Shown: positions 4,401 through 64,000 of the stretch, piece by piece
How positions within the stretch are numbered: the stretch's first letter is position 1
How the letters are laid out: the number at the start of each line of letters is the position of its first letter
Source: Amphiscolops sp. MND2022
Taxonomy: Eukaryota
Direction of reading: 5' to 3'
NCBI GenBank assembly: GCA_964187785.1
Contig: OZ076421.1
Coordinates: forward strand, 4,588,001-4,652,000
Length of the DNA stretch: 64,000 bases
The notes under the pieces: generated by a model
Database searches by the model: none
What the model was told of the DNA's origin: nothing
Seen by the model: the letters and a program-made list of their open reading frames with translations, nothing else
Made by a program: the position numbers and the translations under genes

Positions 4401-5483
4401 AAAAACATTAACTACCCAGGAATTGCAAAATACTTCAAAAAATGTGTAGAAGGCTGTGAAATATGTGCCAAGGACAAACGGGTCCCTAATACTGTAATTA
4501 CGCCCGAGTTACTAAACTAGCCCGAATGGGACCTCGACCCAGAAGATGCAAATTGACCTACTACCGAATTTACCGACCAGTGGCGGATACCAAACAGTGA
4601 CGACAGCAATAGATGTATTCTCAAGATATATATTTGCCTACCCGCTAATTGAGGCGACAGCCACAAATGTGGCCAAGGTGATATTTGATATAATGACGAA
4701 ACACTCTTGCAGACAACCCTCTTCACGGACAAGGGGTCCGTATATACTTCAACAATCCTAAAGGAAATTACCGCGATTTTGGGAATAACACTTGAATGTG
4801 CTACGACGAAACATCCGCAAACGATTGGCAAGTTTGAAAGGACACACGCCTCCCTAAAGACCATCTTGGAAATGGCTTCAGGGGAATATAGACGCCAATG
4901 GCACAAATACCTGCCACTAGCCGTGCTCAATTATATCACAACTTACCATTCTAGTATTGGATGTGAGCCTAGTAAGGTCTTTCATGGCCAAATCCCCTTT
5001 CTTGTAAGGTCTTTCAATGTCCTTGATCATAAAATAGGAAAAAATCCAATTAAAAACTTCCTACCAACGACAGAATTTGCTGAAGAAATACAACAGAGGA
5101 CGCAAATCCTCATTGACTAAACGAAAAAGAATATTATGCAGTCGTATTTAAAATACAAAGAATATTACGATCGCAAGGCCAAAGCAGCTCCGCAACAGGA
5201 AAAGGACTATTGTTTTGTTCGTCAACCGAAAGCGGAAAGTCAAGGCTCTAAAATACCTTTTAGGGACTACAGGTGGATTAGTCCCTTTATTGTAGAAAAT
5301 ATTTTGCCAAACAACAATTATATAGTGCGCCGTTTAAATACAAACAAAACGCAGATTCTACACCGTATCAGGCTCAAAAAAATAGTCCCAAATGCTCCAT
5401 TAGAGGACAAATATAAAGAAGAAAAATTACAGCCCGACGAAGGAATAGCAATACCGCAAGATGATTTGTATACCATTTCATAG
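1437..5483 (+). pseudogene. pol: Pol remnant: aspartic protease, RT, RNase H, integrase
   Basis: LIDTGA (1437-1688); KKPNGKLRLLVDLR and HYVDD (~3000); LMTDAS, IYAKEFLA, ILTDNK (3422-4102); QIDLLPNLP, IDVFSRY, FTDKGS, IGKFERTH (4546-5120); WISPFIVE..LPNNNYIVR (5136-5483). Fragmented by stops and frameshifts. Confidence 0.93.
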
Positions 5484-9972: not shown

Positions 9973-11169
9973 ATGGATAAACCCATTCATTAAATTGATT
10001 TTATTAAATACTCACCTAGTAGTTTAGCAACAATCAACAACAATAATTCAAGTATTTCCATCATCTTACTAAGAGAAGGTGCATATATTTGTTTGCAGAA
10101 TTCTTTTATTAGTCTAGAATTTGAAGTTATTAAAAATGACGATACAAGATATGCAGATGGTGACCAAATAAGTTTAGTCAACTTTGGGCCTGTTGCTTTA
10201 TTCATTGAAGCGAAACTTGTAACTAGTTCATGTAAACATCTACAGAAAGTTGATATCCTACACCCGATATGTTTAATGTACAAACTTTTAACAAGTACCC
10301 AACAAACAAGTCAGTTAATGTATGGGTTTGAAGAATCAATCGCTATCAGAAGACAAGAACTAACAACAGACAAAACGGCAAAAGCAACCTTTTTTGTTAG
10401 AATAAAATTACCTTATATATTTGGATTTGCAGATCAAGAATAAATACCTTATGGATTGGGTTATTCTCTGACATTGAAACGTAATAATAATAAGGATCCT
10501 ATCTTCAGGGACAACGGTGTAGATGCTGCAAAAATAAATATAAAAGATATTGCTTGGTATATTCCACACTATGTTCCTAGCTTAGAAAACCAACAACTTG
10601 TTCTTAATCAAATATTAAAAAAAGATCCAACCGAATTATTTTACACTGAAAGAGTTGTTTATAGAAAAGATGTTAACACCAATAACAAATGGACATTTGA
10701 ATTAGGCAACAGTGGAGAATCGATACCAAGTTTTATAATTGCTGGATTTCAAGCTAGAAATAAAATTGATTCACAAACACATACTAATGCAATATTTGAT
10801 AAACTTCCCATTTCAAATGCTGTTTGTAAAATAGGATCAGAAAAATATCCCGATGATGGAATAGAATGTGACTACAACCGCGACAAATATGATCAAGCAT
10901 ACAGTGAACTTGAAAACTTCTATTTGTTAAAAAGTGAAACGAATCTACTCAATCCGTTTATTGATTTGCATAAATTCAGGACAAATTATAATTTGTATGT
11001 ATTCGTTTTATCCAAACAAAAAGATAATATTGCCAGTCAACCTATTAGGTTGGAATTTAAATTTAGTGCTGCTATTGATGTAGCTGATTTTATAGCTGAT
11101 GCCCTAGTCCTAACACCCAAACTGATAAGTATCAGCAGTGATGGACAAAGGCATTTTGATTTAATATAA
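9973..11169 (+). pseudogene. Polinton-type major capsid protein (double jelly-roll), two in-frame stops
   Basis: ATG 9973, ORF 10093-10443 and ORF 10456-11169 share one frame (398 codons; TAA at 9991 and 10441). C-terminal IGSEKYPDDGIECDY...AYSELENF...FRTNYNLYVFVLSKQ...IRLEFKF resembles Polinton MCP motifs as I recall them. Confidence 0.72.
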
Positions 11170-11521: not shown

Positions 11522-14500
11522 TTAGCCACTTTGTATGTGTTCATTCCATGGGAGACTTTGGGTTAGGTTCCAATACATCCTTTCATCATCAAATGGATTC
11601 AAAGCTATCTTATCTTGCTTTTGAACAGTTATATTATGAGCATTTGAACGGGTAGAATAATTATTTGCAAATGTTGTTTGAGAATTAAATAATGAATTAA
11701 AATAACTTTCCTTCTTGGGAGATTTTTGTATACCTTTTTTTCGAAATTTCTTTATTTGCATAAGAATAAGCATATGACTTTGATCTCAAAGCTATGAAAT
11801 TGTCTAGTTCAATAATTGGTGATGTTTCTATTTTCTTTTCACCTATACCTTTCTTAATTTTTAAAACGTATAATGGAGGGTTTTTATCCATTTCACTGAA
11901 ATCAAAATCATCATTGAAACATTCCAAGTCTTTTATAAGGTCTTTAGTTTTTATTGATAAGATAATCTGTATCCTTATAATCTTAATTATAAGAATCTGT
12001 ATCCATATAATGCAGTTTAATTTTTGAATCATAATATGGTTGTACTTTGTGATAATAAAACTCATACATTAACAACTTGGACAACTCCAAGACACTAAAT
12101 CCTAAATATATAGGTTTATCAAAAGTTATTTTTTCTTTGTCATATTTGTATAAGCTGAAATCATTATAATGTTGTGATGTTCCTTTGAAGCCTTACTTCG
12201 ATTGTATTTTTATTATTTGATCAATTTCAGTATGAGGGATAATCTCTATATTTCTTCTTTTTCTTACATTTTCCATAGGCTTACCAAAGAAAGCATTGTT
12301 CATAAATTTATAAAGATCCTTTCCAAAGTTTGTTTTGGCTTTTGTGCGTTTTTGGGTGTTATGATCAATGTCTTTTGCTAACCATGGACTTTGCTTGAAG
12401 CGGTAAATGGTGTGAATTTTTGTTACTTTCATCCCCAAATTAATATAAAACTTGAACATCCTGTAGTGTATCATATAATTTTGTTTGTTTGTTAGGTCAC
12501 ACATCAATTTAAGTGTGGGTTTATAATTCAGTTGTTTTACACTATTCATATAATCTGAGAAAAGAATAGGACCTGCTTTTGTTTGATAAGGACAAAGTGG
12601 AAAGTTTTCGGTTTTTTCTTTAATTTCAGCCGGATATTCTAAATCACATTCTATGAAGTAGCCATATTCATTATCATCTGGTGTACTCAAAATGTCTTCT
12701 TTAATTTCTTCACACAGTTCCAAATCATCTATCCTAAAAACGGTATCGTTTTAGAGTCTCCAGTAGGAAGGTATTGACTCATTGCCCATTCATAAAGATT
12801 ATTTGCATCTATGTATAAAAGTTTAGTGTTTTCATCTGATTGAATACCGGAGGTGTTTTGTATACAGCTTCGCTGGCGTTGCATATCAGAGGTGCTTTGC
12901 ACATATCGATCACTCATTACACTTGAAATTCCTCCACGTATATTGTTTTCCAACAATAACAACAAGTGTTTATCTTTTATTAAATCTAATTTAATTTTGA
13001 TCATCTTCAAACCAGCTTTCCATGTATAACTTGGTGCTGAGTAACTGTACAACGGATTAATACCATACATAAGAGTAGACTTCTCAACAAAGTTCTCAAA
13101 TACATCAGCTAATTGTAAAACATCCAATTTGAGGTACAACATAGTTAATTCTTGTCCGTTCTTTACATCATATTTTGAATAATATCTTGTGTACGTTTAA
13201 TTTCTTCATCTGATGGATATGCTTGTTTTAGTGTTGACCAGAAATCTTCTTTTTTCAGATTTAATGGTTCTTGGAAATTACCTAGATTAAGATATTCATA
13301 AGGATAAGCCAGTTTCTTATTGAATAATTCTTCCATAAACCCATTTTCATCCATTACTGGTAAGTTGTTCAAACTTTTAACTAATTTATCTAAACTACTA
13401 CTTAGAAAACGATATAAACCTAAGAATCTTAAACAACCTACTTGAATTGATACATAATTTTCCATTGACTTTGGAATTATTTTTGGTTGATACCCCATTT
13501 TGTAAGCTTGTGTTAAGAGTTGTTCAAATATAAGGTGACTATCATACCCAGAAAAGTTATGGAAAAAGACAGGAATAAAACTTGATGACTTTTGTTTACA
13601 ATTTAGATTACATTTAGAGTGGGCTGCTCCTCTGTATTTTCCTTTAGGATGATCATGATCTCTTACTTTACCTTCAGTAAAAGGTTGTTCGCTATCAGCA
13701 AAGCTGGCTTCACAAAGCCAACACTCTTCTGCAAGTTTAAATGATTCTTCTTCTTGAGGAGTTATTTCTAATTCTAAATTTGTTTTAAAATAGTCACTAG
13801 CAATTTTTTCTAAAGTTAACATTTCATTTACAAACCACTTGATACAATCTGTTCCAAAGTATGAATGGTAATAGTTTCCAAATGGTGAAATTACATAAAA
13901 TCCTACTGCAATTGGATATTGTTTAAATAATACTTTGGAGTCATTTGTGGATTGATTAATACATTCGAAATCAGCATATACTCTTATTGGTACAGGAACT
14001 TTTATATGATAATCTTCGAACTTTAACTGATCCTTCGAACTGATTGTGATATTAGTTGGTTGCTGTTTTTGACAACGATCAATATGATCAATTAGAATCG
14101 ATTGCGATCTAAATGCTGTTAGATATCATCTACATACATGTTTCATATGTGAATCTTTATTATTTATTAATCAATGTAACTTTGTTATTAGACAATAGTG
14201 ATTTTCATACAATAACAAATATATTTGTGGTTGTAAGTAATTTTTGTTAATGTGAATTGGTGTTAGAACTGTTCCAGTGAGTTCAAATACATTTATCTTT
14301 ATAGTATTTAGATTTTCAAACTTGGGTGTATCTTTAACGTTCATAGGGAATTGTTCACCTTTCAGGTTGGAATTTATTAAAATGCTTTGAATAACTCGAT
14401 GTTATAATTTTATTATTATCAACTGGATACAAATGAGCTAAAATACACCATAAAAAAACAAAATTGATCATTATTTTTTGTATTTATAATTGATTTGTTA

Positions 14501-15647: not shown

Positions 15648-15861
15648 CATCACCAGTAACTTTTTGATCACTAAGTAATGTTTGTGTTTTTACATCACCA
15701 GTACCCTTTCGATCACTGAGTAATGTTAATATTTAAGTTTCACCACCAGTACACTTTCGATCACTAAGTAATGTTGTTTTTTGTACATCACCAGTAACCT
15801 TTCGATCACTAAGTAATGACTTTTTTTAAATCACCAGTAACTTTTTGATCACTGAGCCATG
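15648..15861 (-). repeat. Array of five 33-nt hairpin-forming repeats with 10-15-nt T-rich spacers
   Basis: Units start at 15648, 15693, 15741, 15786, 15829; consensus CATCACCAGTAACCTTTCGATCACTAAGTAATG. Confidence 0.9.
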
Positions 15862-17520: not shown

Positions 17521-18866
17521 TGCTTTCGATAAATGCCCTTCTTCTTGCTTCTTCGACATAATGGACTCCCAGGGTACTCTGTCAGGTAAATGAAGTCAAT
17601 TACTATTTCATCGGCTATCGGCTCAAACGGCTTGCCACAAATCATGCAGTCTGTGACGCACCCTTGAGTGGGGCTATTAGTTGTTTGCAGCTGTTGTCCT
17701 GTGGGAAAGTGCGCGAAATTCCTCATCGCTAGTGGAGTTGGGGGAGTAACTGCTGGAACCATGGATGGTCCGTTTCCCTGCATGGTTTTTTTTGCACCGC
17801 CACTGCTACCTTTTCGAGTTGGTTGCATGACTTTGACAGGTCATTAGGAGAAGTGACCATAAATCCGCTTTCGTGAGCGAGAGGAGACAAAGGGGGGTCC
17901 ACGAAAGGTATCAAGTACAGAACGCAGCCAAATGATGATGAACCCATTGAGCGTCTCACCTCGCAGTTTGCTGCCTGTGTTCGCCCGCTCTAAGAGGTTG
18001 ATAACCAGAGTAAGGGCCCCGCAGTGTAAGGGCGTAAAGACAGAGGGACACTCATCGTGATTTCCTACTGCCATCTGTCTGCTTCTCACTGTCACTGGCG
18101 TGGATAGTTGGGCGTCAACGTTCATTGACATTAGTTGGGATTCCACATCCATCATGTTTGCTTCGATTTCCGATGAAATTATCGAAACCCCCTCACTGAA
18201 CATTTCCTCTTTATTACTTTACTTTCTGAGTACTATCTTCTTAGCAATTTTGATTTTGAAGGCACCTAGATTTTATCTTCTTCAGTTTGAAAATGAGTGT
18301 TTCCAAAGATGCTTCCTCGACGCTGAGTTTTCCGTTTCTCACATTCCCGGTTTGAGTTCTCGCGCATGCTCAGTCCAAGAGATTGTCGAAGCGGCAAGGT
18401 TGCTCCTTCAAGTTGCTTGCCAGTGGAATTTCAATTGCTTTTCCCACCCTAACTCAACAGATTCACAACAACACCTCGACCCCCTTCAACTACCTTTCAA
18501 GTTGTTTACTACCCCCCTTCACTCCATCTATTGAATCGCAAATGGATAATTAAAACTCGCTACTACATTACGGGGCCAAAAGGGAAAAACGTGAACTACA
18601 ACGATTTCGCTGTAGTAGTTTTTGAATTCTTGAACTAATGGTAATACATACAAATTTCAAGAATCGAGAAAAGCAACGCGAAAGCAAGTGGAATTTTTCT
18701 CGATTCTTGAATTAAATTTAATGCATAGCATGCAAGAATCGAAAATCGACAAATAATGCCATACTATCACCATATAAAGAGCAGTCCATTTTTGCTTTTT
18801 CTTTTATCATTTTGTATTCCATTTTGTTATTAGCGTTCCTCCGGACTTCATCTCACATCTTATTAG

Positions 18867-19179
18867 TGATATACCAGATATCTATATGTTGCTTAATCTT
18901 ATATCATTCCCCCAACCCCCTGTATGTCTAGACTTTATAACAAATACACTTCATTAATGTAACTGATTAATATTCTAGATGTAAACTTGATGTACCTACT
19001 TTATATTCTGTACGATGCATTTTGATTTAGAACACAACTTGAATTCACTCTACACCATCCAGTTGTCTTCGCTTAAGGCCTAATATCTGCAGCTCTATTA
19101 GTGTCTCCTAAAGTACTAACATCAAATGAACATTCCATCTCTATCCCAAAAATCTCTAGTAAAACACAAGTACTTTAAC
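18867..19179 (+). repeat. 5' LTR of copy A
   Basis: Begins TGATATACC and ends AAGTACTTTAAC like the LTRs of B and C; internal motifs TGTCTAGACT and CTGCAGCTCTATTAG are shared. Confidence 0.85.
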
Positions 19180-19190
19180 TGGTGCGACCA
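19180..19190 (+). promoter_or_regulatory. Primer-binding site
   Basis: TGGTGCGACCA directly after the LTR, identical in A, B and C; complementary to a tRNA 3' end GGUCGCACCA (tRNA identity not established; Gly is a guess). Confidence 0.85.
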
Positions 19191-19257
19191 TCTCGTTTCT
19201 TTCCTTTTCTACAATCAATTTTGTAATACAAATTTTCGTCTCTTTCACAAAATCTTC

Positions 19258-19461
19258 TGTACTAATCACCCAAAGTGATTCGACCTCGTAGTCGGTACAA
19301 ACGCAATTCTTCTTCTGTACTAATCACACATTGTGGTTCGACCTAGTAGTCGGTACATCAAAACTTTCTGTACTAATCACCTTTTGTGATTCAGCTCCTT
19401 GCTGGTACACTATCTTCTCTTGTACTAATCACCTTTTGTGATTCAGCTCCGTGCTGGTACA
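19258..19461 (+). repeat. Leader array of four Y-shaped hairpin units (copy A)
   Basis: Units 19258-19299, 19316-19357, 19369-19409, 19421-19461: TGTAC-T-AATCAC-loop-GTGATT-CGAC/CAGC-loop-GTCG/GCTG-GTACA. Confidence 0.93.
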
Positions 19462-19598
19462 CCCGTTTCTTCTCTTATAATCATTTTTCATACTTTAACT
19501 CCCTAATATAATTTCCTTTTCATTTTTGTCTATCTCATTTTTCTAAACCACATTTCTTCACCATAACTTCCTTTTTTCACAATTCTCCATATTTTTTC

Positions 19599-19868
19599 AT
19601 GCCTTCTTTGAATGACTCCGTTTGTATTTGTTTAATTCTCTTCTACATTTTTGGTCTTTGCGCAATTGTTCTGCTCCTTGTTGACAAATTCATCCTTCCT
19701 TTTATTCCACACGCTTTTGATCAATACCGAACATCATCACTCTAATAATTATTTATGTTCCTCACCGAAAATCTTGCCACTATTATTCTTTTCGTTTCCT
19801 ATATCTTTGCCATGATGATTTCTTTAATGCTTCTCATTGAAAAGATTGTTGAATCTCTTTTCAACTAA
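19599..19868 (+). pseudogene. Upstream hydrophobic micro-ORF a (89 codons) with two internal stops in this copy
   Basis: MPSLNDSVCICLILFYIFGLCAIVLLLVDKF...FLTENLATIILFVSYIFAM...; same length as the intact copy in B, with many synonymous differences. Confidence 0.72.
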
Positions 19869-19984
19869 CTTCCTTTTCTTTTCCACTTTCCCCTTTTTCT
19901 TTCCCTATCCCCTCCTTGATTTTTCCGCTTATTTTATTAACACCTTTCCTACCTTTAACCCCATTCTCCTTTTCCTCAATTTGT

Positions 19985-20221
19985 ATGAACCTCCTCTTCC
20001 TTCACCCCACTCCCATCCTTGCTCTTTTCCAACTTCTTTTTCTCTCCCTTTTCCTCATAACTACATCCATATATTTCTATCCCTCTCTCTTCTCCTTTTA
20101 CACTTATCTTCGCCTCAAAATCCATCGCTATTTTCACCCTCCTCCTACTGAACCATCTATTCACCCTGACGTTATTATGGATTGGATTTGGCTACATTTC
20201 AATCCTCATAAACACTCCTAA
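19985..20221 (+). CDS. Upstream micro-ORF b (78 aa), stop overlaps the gag start (TAATG)
   Basis: MNLLFLHP...hydrophobic...PPTEPSIHPDVIMDWIWLHFNPHKHS; C-terminus conserved in B and C. Confidence 0.65.
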   Translation: MNLLFLHPTPILALFQLLFLSLFLITTSIYFYPSLFSFYTYLRLKIHRYFHPPPTEPSIHPDVIMDWIWLHFNPHKHS

Positions 20222-23200
20222 TGTCTGATTCCCATCTCGTTAATCCCCTTCCTTTCGCCTCAAACTCCTCTCAACGTATTACCCATGATATTTCACACAC
20301 TCTTCTTCAATTTCTCAACAATCTTATCTATAATTCAACCACTCCTATTTCTTTTGAAACCTACCCGGAAGATATTTACACTACCCCTCTAATTCGTGAA
20401 CATCATGATTCTTATTTATACTATATTTAAACCCATTCGCTTCTTCCAAATTCTGACGAACCTCCATTTTCTATTCCTTTCACTTCTCCCACAACTCACA
20501 CTGATACTTTTCAAAACAATATCCTTCCCAATAATATTCAAATTCCAATCGCCCATGTGTTTACAACTTTTCTAAACAATCTCCAAGAAAAAAATAACCT
20601 TCTACCTAAACATGTTTTTAACCCTTCCTCCATTCAAGAACTTCTTCAAAAGGAATCTCTTTTTGACCTTCCTAATATTGAACAATTTCGCACAGTTGAA
20701 AATAATCCTCACCATTGGCTTATCACAGATATACTTCAAATTCATCACTTTCAATATCAATTTTTCCAAAATATTACCCTCAATAAAAATACCAAAGAAC
20801 AAATTCAAATATACTCTTTTTCTTCGCAAATTCTTCCGACATAATTACCAACTAGTTTGGCATTCAAAATTTCAAAATGCTTGCAAAAATTGTCCTCAAC
20901 AATTTACTAACGATGAACTTCTACCTTTTCTCGATACTCTTGATAACCAACATCTTTTATAATCTTCTTGATTTTCCTTCTTCTAATTTTGTTTATCTTA
21001 CCTATGACTCTAATAGTATTAACAAAAGCCTCACTCTTCCTCCTCCTGTTCGTCCTTATTTCCATCAATACAATACCCCTCCTTCGATTGAGACAATTTC
21101 TACAGTTTCTATTCAAACTCTCCCTTCCTCGTCGAATCCTGTGACAAATCCTACTTCATCTTTAACTCAACATATTTCTCCTCCTACTTCTCAAAACACA
21201 ACTCTAAACCACAACAACCCTCCTTCGACTTCTCAAATCACAACCTTTAATAACAATCCCCCTCTTTCTCATTCACCAAATCAAAATACTACCCCTTCTA
21301 ACACTCCACCTGCTGTTATTAGTAATATTATTCAACATTCAACTTTCCAAATTCCTACATTAAACCCAATTCCACTTTCTTTAAATACTACTATTCCCAC
21401 TCAATTTCTTTCTCAAAACCCTCCATCTTCTTCTACCCAAAACCATTCTAATTTTCAAACAATTTCTTCCACTACTCAATCTACCACATATAACCCTTAT
21501 ATTTCTCTTTACCCTACTTTTCAAAACTTCCCTACTACTTCTTTTCAACCCCCTCCAAAATCCTCATAATTCGCTTCCTCCCACTTCCACATTATCTTTC
21601 AACCCTTCTTCCTTTTATCCTTCATTTCCTTTTCCAACCACTCCTTCTGTCCCTTTTGCTGCCCTCTCCGACCCTATAAAACTTTTTGATGGCTTAGATC
21701 ATACTTATCCTCCGGAAAAATTCTTAGCCCTCCTCAGTGCACGTGTAACATTTCAACTTGGACCTCAACCTGTAGATATTTAGTCATATTTAACTTGGCA
21801 TTCTCGTCGAATGTCTCTCCTTTATTGTTCCCTCACAGGAACTGCTTCCAATTGGTATGACCGTCTCCCACAAGTTTATAAAGATGATTGGTCATCCTTT
21901 CTTCAAATTTTTAAGAAACAATTTTATTCCCAAAAACACGCATATCATGCTCAAATTGAAGCCCTTTCCCATCTTAAAAAGGATAATGAAAATGTCCGTC
22001 ACTTCGCTCTTAAAGTCGAAACCCTTGTAAAACAAGGTTGGTACAATGAATACCCCTCAACGATTAATCTTAAATGTAATGAAATTTTTACCCGTGGTCT
22101 CCCCAAAAAATTAAAAGATTTCGCTAACAAACGTCAAGTTAAACATATTTCAAGTTCATTAGAACCATCAATCCCATTTCATTCTCTCGTTAATATGGTT
22201 GATTCCGAAGATATTACGCTTGAAAAAATAAAAACTCAAGAACTTTCCCTTGAAATTAACAATTTGTCTAATACCTTCCAACAGAATACAACAATTCTAG
22301 ATTCTCCTCCAGAACCTCCACAAGTTCAAGTAATGGATCCTAAAAATAAATCAAAACCCCAATTCAAAAAATATTGTTCATTCTGCCATAAAAATAACCA
22401 CTCTGTTTCAACTTGTTTCCGCCGTCTCAATATGCTTAAAGAATCAAAACCACAATCTAGATCCCCGACTCCCACATTTTATCAACATTTTAAAAATCCT
22501 TCCAATAAACCTCATTATTTTCGCCACCGTAGTCGAAGTTATAGTAACCCTCCTCGCAAATCTTCTCGCGACACTCGATATCAATCTCGTTCCTATTCAC
22601 GTTCACATTCACGTCCCCGTTACAATACTAAAACCTACTCCCGAACATATTCGCCTTATCACAATCGTGATAGATCTCGATATGATAAACATTATAATCA
22701 TACTCCATATAAACCATATTCTTCTACACGCTCATAATATAGTTCTAATTCCTCCCGTAGTCCATCTAAATATTACCCTCGTTCTCGTGAACGTTCCTCA
22801 AATTTTAACACCCCTACTTTTAACAGATACAATTCTCCTTATCGTCCTCCTTCTAAACCACGTAATGATCGCTATCGTAGTAGATCTCATTCACACTCAC
22901 ACAACCATTCTCAAACCCAATATAAACCATCTATAAATCTTACACATCCATCTACACCGCCTCCTCAAACAAACTCTCAAACAGAATCTATTTTTGAAAT
23001 CAATATGTATCACCCTAATATTTCCTCACCTCAATCTTCTTCCACTTCCACTGAACATGCTAACGCTATTACACCTTCCACTTGGTTCGTTAATTTATAT
23101 ATTTTCAAACCTAGTGAAGATACCTCTATCCCCTCTAAATTAGAACTCTTATTCCTCCTCGATAGTGGTGCATCCATTTGTGTTTTAAATTTACCCACTT

Positions 23201-30928: not shown

Positions 30929-31720
30929 GCGTTATTATCTTGATTGCTGATTGTCTAATGGGTTGAGTTGTTCTAAATCTTGTAAAGTACAAAGTTCAGA
31001 GAGAATTCCTTTTTGCAGCGGAGTTTGAGATGCTTCATCCCCCGGATTCTCTGGCGTTGGGAACCAGTATTGTTCCTTGTCTTCACTTTTGCGATGAGTT
31101 TTGATAAGGCGGCTGGCGTAATGTATTGCATTATAGCCATTCTCTTGGAGTAAGTGCCATGTTGAGACAGGATCCACCGGTTGAATATTCTTCAGTTGTT
31201 CTGGAGTAAGAACCGAGAAATTACCTATATGAGGTCTTTTCTTTATACAGAATGGTTGATCATTCTGTTCAGAATAATTTGGGATTGGGTTTGGATGGTC
31301 ACCCTACAATTAGGTGGGATTGTAATGTCACATGGGTCAAGAATTGGTTCCATGACATTAGAGTATTTGCGGTCAGCTGTTTTTAATTGCATGGGAAAGT
31401 ACGGGAAACTTAATACTCCTTGTCTCAGGTCCAACACTATATGGTTTGGGCTCGTTAGATTTTCCGTCAGTATATCGCCAACTATTCAACACCGCCAACT
31501 TCGAATTTAAGTTCGACTGTAGCTTTCCAATTGTCCATTGGCCACCAATATTTGGAAGTTCGGTGGAGGACCTTCTTTAATGATCGGTTGGGATGTTAAC
31601 AGCTTGATCTTTTGGGGGTAAGACTCTGGTATTGCGCTTGTGAATTGTGAGTTCTCCAAAGTCCGTGGGAAATTATATTTGAGACCTAAATTTGAGGGAC
31701 TTAAGCTGGTTGTCCTTCTG
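30929..31720 (-). mobile_element. Inverted fragment of a family-1-like Gypsy pol (PR to RT linker)
   Basis: EQYWFPTPENPGDEASQTPLQKGILSEL and QLKTADRKYSNVMEPIL match the translation of 1790-2350. Confidence 0.85.
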
Positions 31721-31735
31721 GTGTTATGCGAACAT

Positions 31736-32091
31736 TAATATACCAGATGATATACCAAACATCTCATAACTTATAATTATCCCCCACCCTCTATATGTCT
31801 AGACTTTAGAACAGTGCACCTCATTTCCTTATTTATGAATGTACTCGATTAATATTCTAGATGTACAATGAATTGTCTGACTGTCTGATGTAACTACTTT
31901 ATATTCAATACCATACATTCTGATCTGTACAACACAACTTGAATTGACTCTTCATAAAATAGTTGTCTTCACTCAAAGACCTAATAACTGCAGCTCTATT
32001 AGTGTCTATTAAAGTACTATTTGTAAAGTAAACTAAAAGACCTAATCCTATCTTACCACCTAATAACAAGTAGAACTACAAGTACTTTAAC
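31736..32091 (+). repeat. 5' LTR of copy B
   Basis: Direct repeat of 49657-50013 with about 12 substitutions by manual count; first dinucleotide is TA instead of TG. Confidence 0.93.
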
Positions 32092-32102
32092 TGGTGCGAC
32101 CA
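32092..32102 (+). promoter_or_regulatory. Primer-binding site
   Basis: TGGTGCGACCA immediately after the LTR. Confidence 0.87.
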
Positions 32103-32166: not shown

Positions 32167-32371
32167 TGTACTAATCACACAAAGTGATTCGACACGATGT
32201 CGGTACACAACTTCAATCTTCTTCTGTACTAATCACAAATAGTGGTTCGACTCAGTAGTCGGTACACCTTATCTCTTCTGTACTAATCACCTTTTGTGAT
32301 TCAGCTACGCGCTGGTACAACATTCTTTTCTGTTCTAATCACCTTTTGTGATTCAGCTCCGCGCTGGTACA
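32167..32371 (+). repeat. Leader array of four Y-shaped hairpin units (copy B)
   Basis: Units 32167-32207, 32225-32266, 32279-32319, 32331-32371; stems as in A, loops differ. Confidence 0.93.
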
Positions 32372-33052: not shown

Positions 33053-36000
33053 TGACTGATCCCATACAACCCCTTATTCCCCTTCCCTTTGTTTTCAATA
33101 CCTCTCGACGTGTCACTCGTGATATTTCACAAACTCTTACTCAATTTCTTAACAATCTTATTTATAACTCCACCACTCCTCTTTCTTTTGAAACCTACCC
33201 GGAAGATATTTATACAATCCCTCTCATTCGTGAACATCATGATTCTTATTTATACTATTTTGACACCCATTCTCTTGTTGCAAATTCTGAAGAACCCCCA
33301 TTTTCTATTCCCTTTACTTCTTCCACAAATCGCTCTGATACTTTTCGAAAAAAAACATCTATCCTAATATTATTTATATCTCAATTGCTAATGTCTTTAC
33401 AACCTCCCTCGAACATCTACAAGAAAAAATTAACCTTTTACCTAAACATGTTTTTAACCCTTCTTCCATACAAGACCTTCTCCAAAAGGAATCTCTTTTT
33501 GACCTTCCTAATATTGAACAATTTCGTACTATTGAAAATAATCCCCACCATTGGCTTACTACCGATATTCTTCAAATTCACCATTTTCAATATCAATTCT
33601 TTCAGAATCTTACGCTCACTACCAAAACAAAAGAACAAATTAAGATATACTCTCTTTTCCTTCGAAAATTTTTCCGACATAATTACCAACTCATTTGGCA
33701 CTCAAAATTCCAAGATGCTTGCATAAATTTTCCTCAACAGTTTACTCAAAATGAGCTTTTACCTTTTCTCGATACTCTTGATAATCAACACCCTCAGTTT
33801 TATAATCTTCTCGATTTCCCTTCTCCTCATTTTAAAAACCTTGCCTATGACTCCAACAGTCTTGATAAAAGTCCTAATCTCCCTCCTCCTATTCGTCCTT
33901 ATATGCAACAACACTTTATACCACCTTCAACTGATACAACTTCCAATGTTTCTATTCACACTCTCTCCTCTTCTTCAAATGCTATATTAAATCCTACCCC
34001 ATCTTTAAATCAACACACTTCCACTTCTACTTCTCAAATCACCACAACTACTGAACTCCTTCCTACTTCTAACTCTCCGAACCATTATACTACACCTTCT
34101 AATACTCCACCTGCTGTTCCTTATAATATTGTTCAACCGTCCGCTCTTCAAATACCCATATTACCCCCTATTCCTCTTTCTTTAAATAATACTCTCCCCT
34201 CACAGTCCCTCCCTCAAAATCCCCCACCTTCTTCCGCCCATGATCCTTCTTTACTTAATCAAAACCCATTTTCTTCTTCTATACCACCAATTCCTACTAT
34301 CTCTCAAACTATTTCTTCTACCACCCAATCCACCTCGTACAACCCTTATCTTTCTCTCTATCCTACTTTTCAAAACTTCCCCACTAATTCTCTCCAGCCC
34401 CCTCCAAACCCCCCTAATTCTATTCCTCCTACTTCAACATTACCTTTCAACCCTTCTTCTACATATTCATCTCTCCCTTTTCCAGTCAATCCTTCTGTCC
34501 CTTTTGCTGCTTTGTCAGATCCTATTAAACTCTTTGATGTCCTCGACCATACCTATCCTCCTGAAAAATTCTTAGCACATCTAAGTGCACGAGTAACATT
34601 TCAACATGGACCTCAACCTGTAGATATTCACTCATATTTAACTTGGCATTCTCGTCGAATGTCTCTCCTTTATTGTTCCCTCACAGGAACTGCTTCCAAT
34701 TGGTATGATCGTCTCCCACAAGTTTATAAAGATGATTGGTCATCTTTTCTCTAAATCTTTAAGAAACAATTTTATTCTCAAAAACACGCATATCATGCTC
34801 AAATTGAAGCTCTTTCCCTTGTTAAAAAGGATAATGAAAATGTCCGTCACTTCGCGCTCAAGGTAGAAACACTTGTTAAACAAGGTTGGTTTAATGAATA
34901 CCCTTCTACTATTAACCTCAAATGTAATGAAATTTTTACCCGTGGTCTTCCTGAAAAAATAAAAGACTTTGCCAATAAACGCCAAGTCAAACATATTTCC
35001 AGTTCCTTAGAACCATCAATTCCTTTTCACTCTCTAGTCAATATGGTCGATTCAGAAGATATTACTATTGAAAAAATTAAAACTCAAGAACTTTCCCTTG
35101 AAATTAACACTCTCTCCAATAATTTTCAACAAAATGCAACTATTCAAGATCCTCCTTCCGAATCTCCACAAGTTCAAGCAATGGACCCTAACAATAAATC
35201 GAAACCCCAATTCAAAAAATATTGTTCCTTTTGCCATAAAAATAACCACTCTGTTTCAACTTGCTTCCGCCGACTTAATATGCTCAAAGAATCAAAACCA
35301 CAATCTAGATCTCCGACTCCTACCTTTTATCAACATTTTAAAAGCCCTTCCAATAAATCTCATTATCCTCGTTACCGTAGTCGAAGCCACAGTAACCCTT
35401 CCCGCAGATCTTCTCGCGAAACTCGATATCAATCTCGTTCTTATTCACGTTCACATTCACGTCCTAGAGATAATATTAAAACTCCCTCCCGCACATATTC
35501 ATCTTTCCACCATCGTGATAGATCTCGATATGATGGACACTACAATCAAAATCCTTACAAATCATACACTTCTTCACGAACATGTTATAACTCTAATTCT
35601 TCTCGTAGTCCATCCAAATATTACCCTCGTTCCCGTGAACGTTCCTCAAATCTTTCTTCTTTTAATAGATACAATTCTCCGTATCGTCCCCCTTCTGAAC
35701 CACGCAATGATCGTTACCGTAGTAGATCTCATTCAAACTCAAACAATTATCCTCGATCCCAATACAAACCATCTATAAATCTTACACATTCATCTACACC
35801 GCCTCTTCAGAGCAACTCCAATACAGAAACTAATTTTGAAATAAATATGTATTACCCTAACTCTCCATTATCCCAGCCTTCTTCAACTTATACTGAACAT
35901 GCCAACGCTATTACCCCTTCCACTTGGTTTGTTAATGTATACATTTTCAAACCTTGTGAAGATACCTCTATCCCTTCTAAATTAGAATTCTTGTTCCTAC

Positions 36001-53890: not shown

Positions 53891-54236
53891 CGTACCAACC
53901 AAATTTTGAACCAAAAGAAGGCTTTTGGTTAGTACAGAAAAGGGTGTACCGACAAATATGTCCAATCAAGAAGGTTATCACTAGTAGTATCGACAGAAAT
54001 CGAACCTGCTTGATTATTACAGAAGGATCGGCCGTACCAGCACGTTGCTGAATCACTCGTATTGATTAGTACAGAAGGTTTAGTTGTACCTGCTCGTTGA
54101 ATTACTATAGCGATTAGTACAGGAGACTTAAATGTACCGACTACGAGGTCGAACCACTTCGAAGAAAGGTTGGTACCGAAGAATTACTGCTAGGTACAGA
54201 CGATTTGTCGAATCACTTGTATTTGTGATTAGTACA
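53891..54236 (-). repeat. Leader array of about seven Y-shaped hairpin units (copy C)
   Basis: Reverse complement shows TGTAC-T-AAYC..-loop-..GRTT-CRRC-loop-GYYG-GTAC units, several degenerate. Confidence 0.82.
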
Positions 54237-54837
54237 GAAGTATTGATTGTATCAGTTTGTAGATTTATGAAACAAAGAAACGGTCAGTACTAAAGGTTGT
54301 AGAAAAAGGAAGAAAAGAAGAGAAGTGCACTGGTCGCACCAGTTAAAGTACTTGTTGGTGTTCAAAGATGTTTACTTTTAGAAGCGAAGTACTTTGAGAA
54401 GACTCTAACAGAGCTGCAGTTATTAGGCCTTGAAATCAGTTGACAACTTGATAGTGAAGAATTTATTAGCGTTGTGAAAGGATATAAATCAAATGTACAT
54501 AATTCTAGTCTAGACAATCATTCAATGGGTGCGGGCGGTTGATGATCAAATACTGAATCATAGGTATATCATTATCTTCACAGAAAGTTATCCTGACTTA
54601 GGAGGATTCAATGGTCTCCCAACTAGTCAAACATACCACTGATTGAGAGTAATTTCGCTACTGCTCCAACTCTTTTTGACAAAAAATTCAAATATGTTGA
54701 GAGTTACTTGGGACTTACGTTGCCCTAGCACTCAACTTGATTACAGATCTTCAACAGTTTTTTGTCTAACGAATTGTTTTACAGTCGTCGTTTGTATTCA
54801 TTTTGAAATTAGAACTCAAGTGGAGGCATAAATTTTC

Positions 54838-55305
54838 TGATATGACTCTCGTCTTACTTTTCGATTAACTCCTCTTGATGTAGTCTGGACTTGTATGATT
54901 ATATATAATGTCTATCATAACTTAAGGCTATGGCGGATGTAAGTACACAAATTCTTCTGGATTCTAAAAGACCTACTTGACATCTTCAGCTCTATTAGCG
55001 CCTTTCAAAGTAACCGCTTCTTCTCTCATCATAATCCAACAAACATACTTCGATCTTTGTGCTTAGCCGGTGCCACCATGCTCGTCTCTTACACACATTT
55101 TTCCAGAATTCGTCTCCGTCACCAAATTCCCAAAGAATATGTTTACCCAACTAACCCTTTCTTTTCATTTAAGGTAAATCATTCTTTCTCTAATTACCTG
55201 CAAGCAGGCTCGACTCTGCATGAAGTTATATCAATTTTTCCGTCGGTATATCAATCTTCTGTACTAACCGAAATTGGTATTTGGTTCGACCCTGTGGTCG
55301 GAATA
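54838..55305 (+). mobile_element. Highly decayed copy D: LTR, PBS remnant and one hairpin unit
   Basis: TGATATGAC start, CTTCAGCTCTATTAG motif, CCGGTGCCACCAT (PBS-like, about 55067-55079), unit TGTACTAACC...GGTTCGAC-CCTGTG-GTCG at 55260-55305. Confidence 0.65.
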
Positions 55306-55530: not shown

Positions 55531-55590
55531 CCTCCTCCTCCTCCTCCTCCTCCTCCTCCTCCTCCTCCTCCTCCTCCTCCTCCTCCTCCT
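55531..55590 (+). repeat. (CCT)20 microsatellite
   Basis: Twenty perfect CCT units read directly. Confidence 0.97.
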
Positions 55591-56749
55591 CTTCCATTTC
55601 AATGAGTCATCTGAATGACTGAAACTCCAGTCACGAAATTCCGCTCTAGTCACTTCATTTTGCTTGAAAGTCTTAATGATTCTTTTAATTGAAAAAATTT
55701 GAGTTGCTTCTCTCGCTGCCTGGAACACAATAACGGTTGCCTTCATTTCCCCACATTCATCCCCCATCACACTACATATCTCCAAAGATCTCTCTCTCTC
55801 TCTCATCGTATGCGAAGAACAATTTGTCGTTAAAAACACACGACACTTTCAATGAAACCTTTTTTCTCGAAATCCATCTTCCCATTTTACCTCTACCTCA
55901 AAACTCCCCAATCCTTTCCACAAATTCTTTTGAACGAATTAATCATTCACAAACCCCCCCCCCCCCATTCACATGTACATTCACATTTTTGGTAATTCCA
56001 ACTAAATGTAAGGAACTCTTCCTAAAACACCTTCCTCTCTTTCCAATCAGCATACTTCATTAAAAACTCTTCATTCACAGACTCAACAATCAGTCGAACT
56101 CAACTGCATCTGAAGCTTTTTAACCATATCACAAAATCTTTTCTTCAACATTTTTTTGAACTAAAGCATCTCATGAAAACAACCATTTCCTTATGTTTAA
56201 TATTCAAGTACTTTCCGCAAAACTTCAAACTACTCCTTGACTCTTCTCAACCGAACTCTTTTCAGAAAGGACACGTGCGATAACTGTGCGTTCTATGGAA
56301 ATCATTTCCAAAAACAACTTTTTATCAACACCAACGCTGACAACGACATTTCTTTTCAGAATCTACCTCAAGCATAGCATCTCTACACACGCATTTGGTA
56401 TTCCTGACCAAAAATTGTTGGGTCAGATCAACCCCCCCCCCGTTCCCAGATGAGCACTTCTTTACATCCAGCTCTCGGAACCTGAACCGCCCGCCGGCGC
56501 AAAAGACAATAATTAGGAGTTCCCGGCCTAATTGTGGAATCCCAAAAAAGCTTTGTTTTACCAACTTTCAGCTTCATTTCTTTTAAACTTCGAATACTAT
56601 TCAACTATCGAACTAAATCGTTCCATCTTTCAAGAAAATCAACCAATTTGGAATTCAGTTAAATTGAACGGACTTCTGGAAATGTCGAAAAAATTCAACT
56701 GATTTCGAAAATCATTCTTCAATATTTCACACCAGCGAGAATATAAAAA

Positions 56750-57360
56750 TTTCAAATTCCTGAAAACTGTCCATGCGATTACTATAAAATTTATACCAGT
56801 CAGTTTACACCCAAACGTGCTCTTGCGTGAGCAGTAGCATCAAAAGTAGCCAAAATTAGCCCAAAAGACCAAAAACTCAGATTTCGAACTTTTTCCGACT
56901 TTCTCAAAAACTGCCCATACGAATCAAACGAATATTTTTGCACTCATTCTACCATGTAACAGGGTTCTATGTGTGCAATTAGATCAACATGCGAGCTGAG
57001 AAACAACCAAAATTAGTTAAAAAATGACCAAAAAACAGTCATTTTTGGATTTTTTGATTTTCTCAAAAACTGTCCACACGATTCAAACGAATTTTTTACA
57101 GTCGTTCTGTACCATATTAGGGTCCTATGTGTGTCAGTTCATCCAAATCGAATGACTGGGATTTGATCAACATAGCCCAAAATTGAGCAAAAACGGCCAT
57201 TTTAGGACTTTTCCATTTTCGCGAAACTGTAAGCACCATTCGAACGAAAATTTCTACAGCCGTTCTACGCCACATTTAGGTCTTATTTGTGCAATGACAT
57301 CAAAATCGTGTGACTGGAATCTGAGAAACAGCTAAAATATTTCCAAAAAAGATCAAATGA
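56750..57360 (+). repeat. Degenerate tandem repeat, ~155-bp unit, about 4 copies
   Basis: TTCTCAAAAACTG.CCA.ACGA.TCAAACGAA...GGT.CTATGTGTG recurs near 56755, 56900, 57060, 57215. Confidence 0.8.
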
Positions 57361-58265
57361 AAAAAGTAATTTGATTTTAAATCAGTTTACAACTCGTTCA
57401 CATGCACGGTACTGGTTTGAAAGAATTTTGCCGGAATAACGTTCACAAGAAAACGTATGGACGAACCTTCTGCAGTAGGATATGAGCGTGTTCCGAAATA
57501 TCGTACACCACAGACGCAGAACAAATGCACTATATCTGAACTTTTATGTTATTAGAACTAAAAACACCTGCAAAAGTGTAGCCTGCTTTCAAACTAAAAC
57601 CCGATTGGAGCTTTTGTTTGGTCCAATTTTTTTTCTTTTTGAATTTAGTTTACGAAAATAACGTTTTGAAAAACAAAGGAGCTATATCCAAACTTTTGAT
57701 GTTAAATCTGAGCATAAACATTCTACACAAGGAAGAAAGAGAGTCGGTTTTCAAATCTTTCCAGTTTCCATTGTTCTTTCTTCCGATATTGACTTTTACT
57801 GAAAGTGATTTGAGAATAGCGTACATCAGAGAAAGTGAGCAGGATTTCAAACTAAAACATTTCACACCAGCAAGAATGTCTTGCTTTCATGTTATCAATT
57901 TCGATTTTTAGTTTTGTTCCATTTTGAACTTTACTGATTGCGTTTTCCTAATTTACCAGAATATTGTGGACTGAAACAATCAGGGCTAGTTGATTCAACG
58001 AGATGTGATATAAACAAACTGAAACTATCTTGACAACTCAAACTTACTTCCAATTCAAGTTGAACTTCGAAGTTTCTTATGATCAGAGTAGCCAATATCG
58101 TCACAGATTTATTTGAATAATTCTACGTTGTTTGTTGAATGTGAAACAAACGGATCTCGAACTTCATAAAATCAAACCTGACTCTAACAGATATAGTTTC
58201 TATTATCGTACCTTTCGACAATAGGCGCAGATCGACAATAAACGGAGCTCTGGAACAATCTCACA

Positions 58266-58932
58266 ATGAACAAACCCCGATCGATTGAACCAGTTATTAG
58301 GATTGTTTCTAGCGGGAAAACGACTGAGCTTCTCAGTCGGAATAAACAAAACGATCATCTCCAAAAATCTTGCATCGCCGTAAATTACGCAAGTGATTTG
58401 AGATACAACTGGACGCAGGTTGTTTCTAACGACGGGCAATCAGTTGAAACAATTTGGACTTTGACACTTGATCCAATTTATGAGAAACTGGCATAATATG
58501 ATGTTGTAGGTGAAATGTGCTACCTTCCTTTCTCTTTCCTATTATCCAAACGATTGCTCAGAAATCGTTTCAGGCATTGACGAAGGAAAACGTTTCGATG
58601 ACATTGTTGCCTTATGTGACCAATTGGCTATGGCAGGAAAAATAGTCTTTGTCGCTGCACGCATTGGAAATCACCGCGGAGAGGGCTTAAAAAAATTCTC
58701 AATCTCATTTCCAAATTTGATTCAATTAATTTGTTGACCGCTCTTTGTGGCATGTGTTCGAAAGAGAAAAGTTCTTGCACAAGGCATCGAACATTCGTGG
58801 AACCAGAAGAAATAATAATTGGTTCTGAAGTGAAATAATCGCAGTGCCGCAGGTGCTGGAAACTCGGAGAACAAAACAAATGAAAAAGTTGAGCAGTTCA
58901 ACCTCGATCACCAAAACATAATGATCAAGTAA
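58266..58932 (+). pseudogene. TK1: Thymidine kinase (TK1-like) pseudogene with a 64-nt intron (58510-58573)
   Basis: SSGKTTELL P-loop, CIAVNYASDLRY; splicing GT..AG gives YDVV-G-IDEG; GKIVFVAA; ILNLI..LTALCGMC. In-frame TAA before YDVV and frameshifts. Confidence 0.87.
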
Positions 58933-61900: not shown

Positions 61901-63345
61901 TGTGTTTTGTCTTAAGAAAGACTTTAAAAGTCAACTTCAATCTTTTACTTTCACGAGTTACATACGAAAATCGGGAGTACTTCTGTTAATAATTAAGTGT
62001 TGATGATCGAGGAAGAAATTCTAAATGTTTAGATTTGAAAGCAGTCTACAGTTTCGCTCGTTTGAAATTTTTTAGTTCTACTATAACATCAAAAGTTCAG
62101 ATGTAGCGCATTAGCTTTGCGGTGCACGTTATTTCGGTGAACACTGTCATGCTACTGCATAAGGTTTTGCATGTTCACAACTCTTCGGCTGAGATTTTTA
62201 TAAGATTCTCATTGCACTTTTATAGCTCCTAAATTGATATTATTTCCAGTCAGAAACGTCAATTTTGATATGAAGAAATCTAGCGTAAGTGCTCATAATG
62301 TAATCAAAACTTTTTTGTCTCAAGAATCTCTTTGACCGTTGAGCTTTAAGACTTTGAAGGTTTTCGACTTAGGAGCCTCAAACGTGCACCACAGAAATGT
62401 ATCAGAAACTTTTCGGTTGGGAGCCAAAAACGTTTCCGAAACCATGAAACCGTTTCTAGTTGAGTGAGGTTTGGTTTTTTAAAATTCCAAGAGCCGTTTG
62501 TTTCACTTGCAACAGGCAACGCTGGAATGTTCAGTTACTTGAACATTTTATCGATCAGATTAAATTGACTCTTATGATGATTAGAAACTTCGAAGTTCAT
62601 TTTTTTGGAAAACAGTTGTGTTGTCAAGATAGTTACTGTTTGTGTATATCTGATCTTGTTGAATCAACTTGCCCAGGTTTCCCCAGTGCACGATATTGTT
62701 GTTAATTCATGAAAAGTATCTATTAAAGTTGAAACGAAACAAAAGGTCGAAACTTGAAAAGGACGGAATGTGAGACACATTCTTCTCCATGTGATATGTT
62801 CAGTTCCGATATAACATCAAAGTTTGAATGTAGCGAATTGATTCTGTTGTAAACGTTATTCCCGTAAATTTATTCAAAGCAGAACATCGGGTTTAAATAT
62901 TGAAAATGAACTTCAATTCATATCTTGATCTGTTTTGCTGAAAGTGATGACAAATGTGTGCGTCGGAAGACTTCTGAAACTTGATGACAGTTCAATGAGA
63001 TGAACATGACTGAATTTCTGTCGCACATTATCGCAATTTATTGAAAACTCAGCGCTTGCTTGTGCAGCACAAAGAACGCAAAGAGATATCTTCACTGAGT
63101 TGGAGTTGATTCAAATATTTTCCAACATTCTATATTTTGAATTGAAATTGAAAAGAAAACTCTATAGCACAAAAAAAACTAATTAGTCGCACCTCACCAG
63201 TTAAAAATCCACCATTAATATTTAGCCAAAACTCTTAAACCTTGAAATCGTTCACAGAACTTTTTTTGCATTGTGCATTTCCTAACTAGAAACTTTTGAA
63301 TTTCAACATGAATTTTCAAGTTTTACGGGTACTTATGAAACTTTT

Positions 63346-63982
63346 TTATTTGATGATTAGGTATTGGTGATCGGGGTTGAAATGCTCAACATTTCCATTG
63401 GTTTTGTTCTCCGAGTTTCCAGCACCCATCTGCGGCACTGCGATGATTCCGTTTTCAGCACCAATTGTTTTTTCTTCTGTTTCTACTAGTGTGCGATGCC
63501 TTGTGAAGGAACTTTTCTCTTCCGAGCACATATCACAAACAGCGGTCAACATCCGAATTCATTCAACTTTGGGTAGAAGATTGAGAATTTTTAGGAGCCC
63601 TCTCTGCATTGAGTTCCAATCAGTGCAGCGATGATGACTATGTTCCTGCTACAGCCAATTGGTCACAAGGCAACAATGTCATCGGAAAATTGTCTTTTGT
63701 CAATGTCCTTCGTCAATGCTTCGTCTGAGCAATCGTTTGGATAATAGAAATGAAAAAAACAAGGTAGCACGTTTCACCTACAACGTCATATTATGCCAGT
63801 TTCTCATAAATTGGATCGTGAGAAACAACATGCGTGGAGCTGTATCTCAAGTCACTTGCGTAATTTACGGCGATGCAAGGTTTTTAGAGATGACTGTATT
63901 GTTTAATCCGACTGAGAAGATCTTTCGTTTTCCCGCTAGACATAGGCCCAATAACTGGTTCAATCGATCGGGATTTGTTCAT
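63346..63982 (-). pseudogene. TK1: Second TK1-like pseudogene, inverted
   Basis: VIGPMSSGKT, CIAVNYASDLRY, same LA*YDVV stop and intron donor, LTAVCDMC; internal deletion and extra stops. Confidence 0.87.
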
Positions 63983-64000
63983 TGTGCGTTTGTTCCAGAG

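Follow-up and report, generated by a model that had tools for sequence, protein, structure and literature searches.

Is a short tandem repeat in the leader of a retroelement a passenger of its host, or a structured part of the transcript? The question is raised by a 64,000-nucleotide (nt) stretch of the Amphiscolops sp. MND2022 genome (assembly GCA_964187785.1, contig OZ076421.1, positions 4,588,001 to 4,652,000 of the forward strand), hereafter the window, in whose numbering positions are given. Copies of a Ty3/Gypsy-type element, here called A to D, lie in this window, and in their leader, between the primer binding site (PBS) and the first open reading frame (ORF), stand head-to-tail units with a repeat of about 52 nt. 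A preliminary description of the window had proposed that each unit folds into a Y-shaped three-way junction and that the structure of the RNA is under selection. We followed this up across the genome and in sister families of the element; judged from the pattern of base changes described below, it is highly probable that selection has acted on the RNA structure of the array.

The first unit of copy A (A1, 19258..19299) reads TGTAC-T-AATCAC-loop-GTGATT-CGAC-loop-GTCG-GTACA, with two outer arms, stem 2, stem 3 and a single unpaired U at the junction; the second hairpin of a unit is either CGAC/GTCG, as in A1, or CAGC-loop-GCTG. A1 scores 60.6 bits with the covariance model and is predicted to take the Y fold in isolation, at -9.8 kcal/mol. 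A2 (19316..19357) has in stem 2 the conserved U.G wobble (AATCAC/GTGGTT), and stem 3 is of the CAGC/GCTG type in both A3 (19369..19409) and A4 (19421..19461). The linkers, at 19300-19315, 19358-19368 and 19410-19420 (within the span 19300..19420 from the end of A1 to the start of A4), are pyrimidine-rich and G-poor, with YTTC ends; units and linkers alike are given on the forward strand.

Matches to the strict unit pattern number 1036 in the 1.07-Gb genome, as compared to 0 for the reversed control. For the statistics, 272 units were collected from 57 independent loci, detection being based only on the arms and the upstream pyrimidines, and all values for the family of the window (family 1) rest on these 57 loci. 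A pairing score of at least 16 out of 20 over the 10 pairs of stems 2 and 3 was reached by 87% of the 266 parsable units and by 0% of the shuffled interiors. The arrays comprise 2-9 units, and runs of identical units occur. Since the repeat periods (52, 53, 55, 58 and 50 nt) are multiples of 3 in only 21 of 202 cases, the array is not coding, and a coding repeat was rejected. Stems have an entropy of 0.10-0.36 bits per base and loops of 0.83-0.86 bits, loops and linkers being, base for base, about 5 times more variable than stems. The free variation of loops and linkers in the preliminary description thus holds as far as divergence is concerned, but the linkers are not free throughout: genome-wide, pyrimidines make up 80% of their bases and G only 3%, and 180 of the 202 linkers terminate in CTTC or TTTC. 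The order of PBS, array and first ORF is constant in 45 measured leaders and in the sister families, and in every family 100-400 nt separate the array from the first ORF, so that a conserved tandem array at this place, as first described, is borne out. A cmscan of the window from 18500 to 21000 against Rfam 15 (E ≤ 10) gave no match to the array, in line with the earlier expectation; three matches outside the array were at chance level (14-21 bits, gathering scores being 32-100). The unit pattern also had 0 matches in a metagenome scan. The unit would represent an uncatalogued RNA motif family, which annotators would otherwise log as a plain minisatellite in the leader of a transposable element.

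The changes within family 1 preserve pairing. Stem 3 occurs in the fully paired types CAGC/GCTG (52 loci), CGAC/GTCG (50), CAAC/GTTG (4) and CAGT/ACTG (1), and CGAT/ATCG was also seen by eye in older lineages. Stem 2 takes the forms AATCAC/GTGATT, AATCAC/GTGGTT and AACCA/TGGTT, a progression from U-A via U.G to C-G, and the longer form AACCAAAA/TTTTGGTT in older lineages; the wobble of the GTGGTT form is fixed in the second unit at 38 of the 57 loci. Over 37 distinct units, 98.9% of the cells pair, as compared to 16-46% in slid controls. RNAalifold, applied to isolated units, predicted the same unit fold de novo. The compensatory types go back to a handful of events, which were afterwards copied many times.

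Three sister families, with pol 51%, 45% and 42% identical to that of the window's family and with the same PBS (tRNA-Met), were obtained through pol homologues in one European Nucleotide Archive (ENA) assembly. One of their leaders was checked and found at 100% identity in the genome from which the window comes; therefore, the ENA contigs do not represent independent species. The family 1 covariance model gave no match on two sister-family loci, and the analogy of the sister arrays was recognised by eye and alignment. These arrays consist of 6-8 modules, lie 150-500 nt past the PBS and differ from family 1 in the sequence of their stems. In families 2 and 3 the module is GUUC-CCAAC-(hairpin of 4-7 bp)-AUUCGU/AUUCCU/AUACGU-GUUGG, and in family 4 it is ACCG/ACUG-GUUUAUC-(hairpin)-UGACA-CGGU/CAGU. 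Across 13 aligned leaders of families 2 and 3, the 69 annotated pairs are paired in 93.2% of cases, versus 15-38% after sliding, and 16 of the 69 show changes on both sides, versus 2-8 in slid alignments, a number reached by 0 of 500 shuffles. For instance, the outer arms vary as CCAAC/GUUGG, CUAAC/GUUAG, CCACC/GGUGG and also CTGAC/GTCAG, and the inner stems as CGCU/AGCG versus CACU/AGUG and UACAUU/AAUGUA versus UGCGUU/AACGUA. Since neighbouring modules carry different arms, closure takes place within the module in families 2 and 3, and RNAalifold, unaided, predicted four of these modules. Older family 1 units end in GGUUCAAC-AUUCCU-GUUGG, a frame common with family 2, from which the modules of families 1 and 2 are inferred to be homologous. 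The earlier claim that compensatory and wobble changes maintain the complementarity of stems 2 and 3 thus stands, and is backed by the arrays of the sister families.

On which strand, and for which partner, might such a structure act? Fixed internal G.U pairs occur in family 1, where one wobble is deep and two are minor. In families 2 and 3 three G.U pairs are fixed, of which two lie within hairpins, and an internal A.C is never fixed. The unpaired parts are G-poor on the sense strand; the fixed internal G.U pairs and the G-poor unpaired parts hint at the plus strand. A multivalent protein-binding platform, for instance a packaging signal, would agree with three features of the arrays: their position, their modular multivalency and their unpaired motifs, which are specific to each family and sit on a scaffold that is conserved. 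Our best explanation overall, to which we give a probability of roughly 0.45, is that the array would be a cis-acting, multivalent protein-binding platform on the sense genomic RNA of this env-bearing, endogenous-retrovirus-like Ty3/Gypsy clade, with a function akin to packaging or dimerisation. Each repeat would contribute two short hairpins, of 6 and 4 bp, together with two complementary arms that do not vary. The G-poor pyrimidine linkers could not pair with each other and, as a consequence, each module would fold locally. Selection would keep the base pairing, with loops, linkers and copy number (2-9) left to drift, and the row of modules would offer multiple sites to a protein encoded by the element. 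The likeliest partner would be the Gag nucleocapsid (NC): Gag has one CCHC knuckle, CSFCHKNNHSVSTC, followed by approximately 150 residues rich in Arg-Ser repeats (knuckle at 35223-35264 and tail at about 35300-35750; the knuckle of copy A is at 22375-22416). This tail resembles SR domains or the tail of the hepadnavirus core protein. The interval from the PBS to the first ORF is the usual position of a packaging (Psi) signal, and known Psi regions are recognised by Gag/NC. The array lies between the PBS and gag and has a conserved secondary structure, and for Gag/NC recognition the sequence offers only the CCHC knuckle and the basic tail. A Psi-like role in packaging or dimerisation, in which family-specific motifs would let co-resident families recognise their own RNA, is therefore put forward tentatively, and the packaging role itself as a putative one to which we lean without conviction.

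A number of observations weigh against this interpretation, or against parts of it. The 5 pairs of the outer TGTAC/GTACA arms show neither variation nor covariation and are palindromic (TGTACA). Variants present in at least two loci are no cleaner than private ones, and a McDonald-Kreitman-like test of shared (at least two loci) versus private variants found no enrichment of pair-preserving changes; private mutations strike the stems and break pairs freely, CpG sites being hit recurrently. Once the single old U.G is set aside, no aggregate asymmetry between G.U and A.C is seen in family 1 (47 versus 54), nor in families 2 and 3 (24 versus 25). Since shared variants are no cleaner and G.U is about equal to A.C, most of the visible variation reflects the neutral decay of dead copies after insertion, and the strand and ongoing selection are only weakly indicated. 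The preliminary description had read G-U pairs as evidence for RNA; this is retained for the one old, fixed U.G, but otherwise G.U pairs are about as frequent as A.C and say little about the strand. In addition, all families come from one genome, so the covariation is not a cross-species one, and the family 2 array does not stand out in stability (z = -1.1). The loops of family 1 vary freely and loop 2 is 1% G, which squares poorly with the way in which zinc knuckles classically recognise unpaired G. Finally, in the partition function of the whole copy A array, closure within the unit has a probability of only 0.00-0.16.

This last result bears on topology. Isolated family 1 units are predicted to take the Y fold, at about -10 kcal/mol, but in the whole copy A array each 3′ arm pairs with the next 5′ arm with a probability of 0.78-0.93, and the first and last arms pair with each other at 0.89. 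With a closing stem that is invariant and palindromic and so carries no covariation, the three-way junction is not supported as originally drawn; it is one of at least two candidate topologies. The outer arms may serve to close such a junction, but they may also make a hairpin with the linker as its loop, or join one molecule to another. Beside this, most family 2 leaders (e.g., L060:6975-7005) contain, 35-65 nt past the PBS, a pair of the form GGTAC ... N16 pyrimidine-rich ... TGTACA, which resembles the succession of 3′ arm, linker and 5′ arm of family 1.

Could the array serve translation instead? Its UCUU-rich linkers and hairpins might recruit ribosomes or host factors such as PTB, as an internal ribosome entry site (IRES) or shunt, or constitute a Gag-binding switch between translation and packaging like that of the Idefix 5′ untranslated region (UTR). 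The short distance to the first ORF in all families and the pyrimidine-rich linkers with their CTTC/TTTC ends agree with this possibility, and PMC3383448 refers to errantivirus leaders that have IRES activity and to a switch between the 5′ UTR and Gag. However, the leaders contain 0.73 AUG on average, where 4.33 are expected, and none in 21 of 45. This depletion suggests that ribosomes scan through the leader; being the signature of a scanned rather than a bypassed leader, it speaks mildly against an IRES. A unit of only about -10 kcal/mol is, for its part, too weak to block scanning, and on balance we consider translation control unlikely. Somewhat less likely still is a nuclear-export or stability element of the constitutive transport element (CTE) or Rev response element (RRE) kind, whose repeated helices would recruit an export adaptor or a Rev-like protein of the element to the unspliced multi-ORF RNA. 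Elements of 13-18 kb with many ORFs and env probably have both unspliced and spliced RNAs, ORFs without explanation lie between the leader and gag, and unpaired motifs flanked by covarying helices are repeated 6-8 times (AUUCGU/AUUCCU in families 2 and 3, GUUUAUC with UGACA in family 4), all of which would suit such an element. Known CTE and RRE elements, however, are located near the 3′ end or inside env, not in the 5′ leader.

The array might also act as DNA, as a row of sites for a transcription factor of the host or the element, and so serve as an enhancer or insulator comparable to the 12 Su(Hw) sites that the 5′ UTR of Drosophila gypsy carries. Indeed, its position and its tandem layout of variable copy number correspond to those of the gypsy insulator and of the repeats in the gtwin 5′ UTR (PMC3383448), and its invariant parts are the sequence motifs CTTC-TGTAC-TAA and GGTACA. 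What makes this improbable is that complementarity is kept rather than sequence, with at least four stem 3 types, several stem 2 types and all stems replaced in the sister families, that the fixed U.G would turn into a C.A mismatch if read on the opposite strand, and that the unit is unlike the Su(Hw) motif (no scan with that motif was made). The least probable case, to which we give very little weight, is a functionless, palindrome-rich minisatellite that arose by slippage and is carried along by the element. Such a repeat would explain the copy number of 2-9, the runs of identical units and the private mutations that break stems; it would not explain why arrays persist in four families with pol 42-51% identical, where the family 1 model draws a blank in two sister loci, nor why compensatory double changes lie far above slid and shuffled controls. 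If the arrays act only as DNA or have no function, they are a curiosity of one clade of transposable elements.

The protein-binding platform on genomic RNA, which we prefer, invites a further and more doubtful proposal, namely that the arrays form a putative modular "barcode" system for genome recognition, with one RNA module for each co-resident retrovirus-like family. The modules would be the two-hairpin unit, the bulged hairpin with AUUCGU and the internal-loop hairpin with GUUUAUC/UGACA. Tandem copies would tune avidity, and each module would co-evolve with the Gag or an accessory protein of its family, in such a way that only the family's own RNA is packaged or exported. Outside yeast Ty1 and Ty3, little is known of how long terminal repeat (LTR) retrotransposons and the endogenous retroviruses of invertebrates select their own genomic RNA. 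If true, the barcode would be the first defined architecture of a packaging signal for metazoan Metaviridae, and a case of specificity evolving by the replacement of modules within a fixed scaffold. With its compact repeated build, its strong covariation, its more than 1000 copies and the four or more diverged versions that a single genome offers, the array would be well suited to binding and probing experiments with modules swapped between families.

The sequences and coordinates first quoted are all correct, including the stem 3 switch from CGAC/GTCG to CAGC/GCTG, the GTGGTT wobble of stem 2 and the AACC/GGTT stem of copies C and D; the numbers of units also agree (4 in A, 4 in B, about 6-7 decayed ones on the minus strand in C, and 1 in D). 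A generic arm pattern has 8 matches in the window, where 0.56 are expected. The PBS of copy A (19180..19190, forward strand), TGGTGCGACCA, is complementary to the 3′ end of elongator tRNA-Met(CAT), whose gene, typed by ARAGORN, is present in the same genome. The array starts 68-75 nt past the PBS and, in copy A, stops 138 nt short of the first ORF (19599..19745, forward strand), which encodes a hydrophobic micro-protein of 48 aa and marks the 3′ boundary of the AUG-poor leader. Micro-protein ORFs of about 40-48 hydrophobic residues directly past the array (MPSLNDSVC..., MPSLKNVV..., MPPSVDTT...) are conserved in position in families 1-3, with homologues in the sister families at L060:7689-7809 and L101 about 5190-5310. 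Copy B, on the forward strand, has its PBS at 32092..32102 and its four-unit array at 32167..32371 (units 32167-32207, 32225-32266, 32279-32319 and 32331-32371; covariance-model scores 53-63 bits); the 5′ arm of its fourth unit is TGTTC. Copy C, on the minus strand, belongs to an older lineage, and its array (53891..54236) has partly decayed units, with stem 2 including AACC.../...GGTT and longer variants. Five of these are covariance-model matches with E-values from 3e-7 to 0.014 (54193-54236, 54133-54177, 54085-54121, 54033-54073 and 53891-53936), and in addition there are one weak match (53986-54021, E 6.4) and decayed remnants. In the PBS of copy C (54331..54341, minus strand) the complementarity to the tRNA reaches 14 nt. 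The single decayed unit of copy D (55260..55305, forward strand) has AACC/GGTT as stem 2, CGACC/GGTCG as stem 3 and a degenerate 3′ arm.

The host element is 13-18 kb long, is of Ty3/Gypsy type and has many ORFs, coding for capsid, CCHC knuckle, reverse transcriptase, integrase and env, and some ORFs between the leader and gag are without explanation. The env gene matches PF24664 (Monjiviricetes fusion glycoprotein). Copy A continues directly into the 5′ LTR of copy B (31700-31760); the two copies are only about 84% identical and there is no clear target-site duplication, so that either B was inserted into the 3′ end of A, or A and B recombined. Elsewhere in the genome, at L048 (G000:C2:91748556-91751596), the last unit of an array runs directly into the beginning of an LTR, behind which lie a second PBS and array (period of 603 bp), and on contig 8 (G000:C8:46943170-46950939) units recur five times with a spacing of about 1.9 kb; both patterns look like tandem LTR-leader arrays or nested self-insertions. 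GTAC as an integration target, which would explain the fusion of LTR and array at L048, was rejected because, among 47 sequences taken around LTR-start-like motifs, the clear LTR starts have heterogeneous flanks. The idea that the units mimic LTR ends or integrase sites was also discarded, the LTRs starting with TGATATACC and ending with TTTAAC. The window further contains a 45-nt tandem repeat of 4.6 copies (15648-15853), a (CCT)22 microsatellite (55531-55595), a 158-nt tandem repeat (57031-57324) and a large inverted repeat whose arms are 80-95% complementary (58248-64000). Upstream of the retroelements, one ORF (10456-11169, forward strand) has a double-jelly-roll-like domain (PF21738, E 1.7e-14) and another (13163-13822, minus strand) a weak Endonuclease VII match (PF02945, E 3.7e-4, under the Pfam cut-off); they may belong to a Polinton/Maverick-like or other DNA-virus-like insertion.

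Some resemblances of the unit to other motifs were followed as well. The segment GTGATTCGACC (19278-19288) resembles, in sense orientation, the T arm of the primer tRNA-Met, GTGAGTTCGAGCC (gene used for the comparison: L076:1501-1573, minus strand), which may be chance; pairing of the units with this T arm, or their derivation from it, is not supported, only about 5 bp of pairing being possible. The segment GGTTCGACC of unit 2 has what we take to be the look of a B box. The invariant 5′ part UGUACUAAY, present in every family 1 unit (e.g., at 19260-19266), contains UACUAAY, and the U/C change in stem 2 keeps this motif. UACUAAY (ACUAAY) is the motif of branch points and is bound by SF1 and STAR proteins. 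Family 2 leaders have ACUAAC-U-UAAC just ahead of the first module. As splice signals, the UACUAAY and GGUAC motifs of the unit are without a matching 3′ splice site. A search for sequencing runs of RNA turned up none on record, and the four runs that contain the stretch gave contigs that are short and fragmented, none of which spans it, and that say nothing on expression.

How does the array compare with known systems? Hammerhead and other small three-way-junction ribozymes have, like the putative Y-shaped unit, three helices within about 40 nt, and they are found in the repeats of sequences akin to retroelements (retrozymes), but the unit has no conserved catalytic core: the hammerhead core (CUGANGA ... 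GAAA) is absent, there is one unpaired junction base and Rfam gives no match, so that a hammerhead was rejected. The host resembles the "ancient errantiviruses" in its gag-pol-env Ty3/Gypsy organisation, its viral fusion glycoprotein and its tRNA PBS; env-bearing Ty3/Gypsy elements are a known kind in invertebrates, with env genes classed as F-like or gB-like, and leader repeats or leader structures are not mentioned in that study (Chary and Hayashi, eLife 2026, PMC13524379). The Psi signals of human immunodeficiency virus 1 (stem-loops SL1-4), murine leukaemia virus (SL-A to D), mouse mammary tumour virus and Ty1 (TIPIRT) resemble the array in being structured regions of the genomic RNA, made up of several stem-loops and placed between the PBS and gag, and a CCHC nucleocapsid is present in the element described here (related papers: PMC8096270, PMC6844567, PMC5454406). 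They are, however, single-copy sets of non-repeated stem-loops, whereas here near-identical modules of about 52 nt stand head to tail in variable number. Tandem structured RNA modules in a Gypsy leader appear, as a design, not to have been catalogued so far. The nearest analogue in design is the alphavirus packaging signal (PMC5869531), a multivalent series of small stem-loops, each with GGG, in which the number of stem-loops and the shared motif set the specificity of packaging, different clades using different signals; that signal lies in the coding sequence of a plus-strand RNA virus, is not made of tandem duplicates and shows no homology, so the analogy is one of design only. By position, the nearest system is the gypsy Su(Hw) insulator, which works as DNA; together with the 5′ UTR repeats of gtwin, ZAM and Idefix (PMC3383448), it shares with our array the place between PBS and gag, the env-bearing Ty3/Gypsy host and the tandem layout. 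The errantivirus repeats are sequence-defined double-stranded DNA sites for zinc-finger or chromatin proteins, whereas in the arrays described here complementarity is conserved and sequence is replaced.
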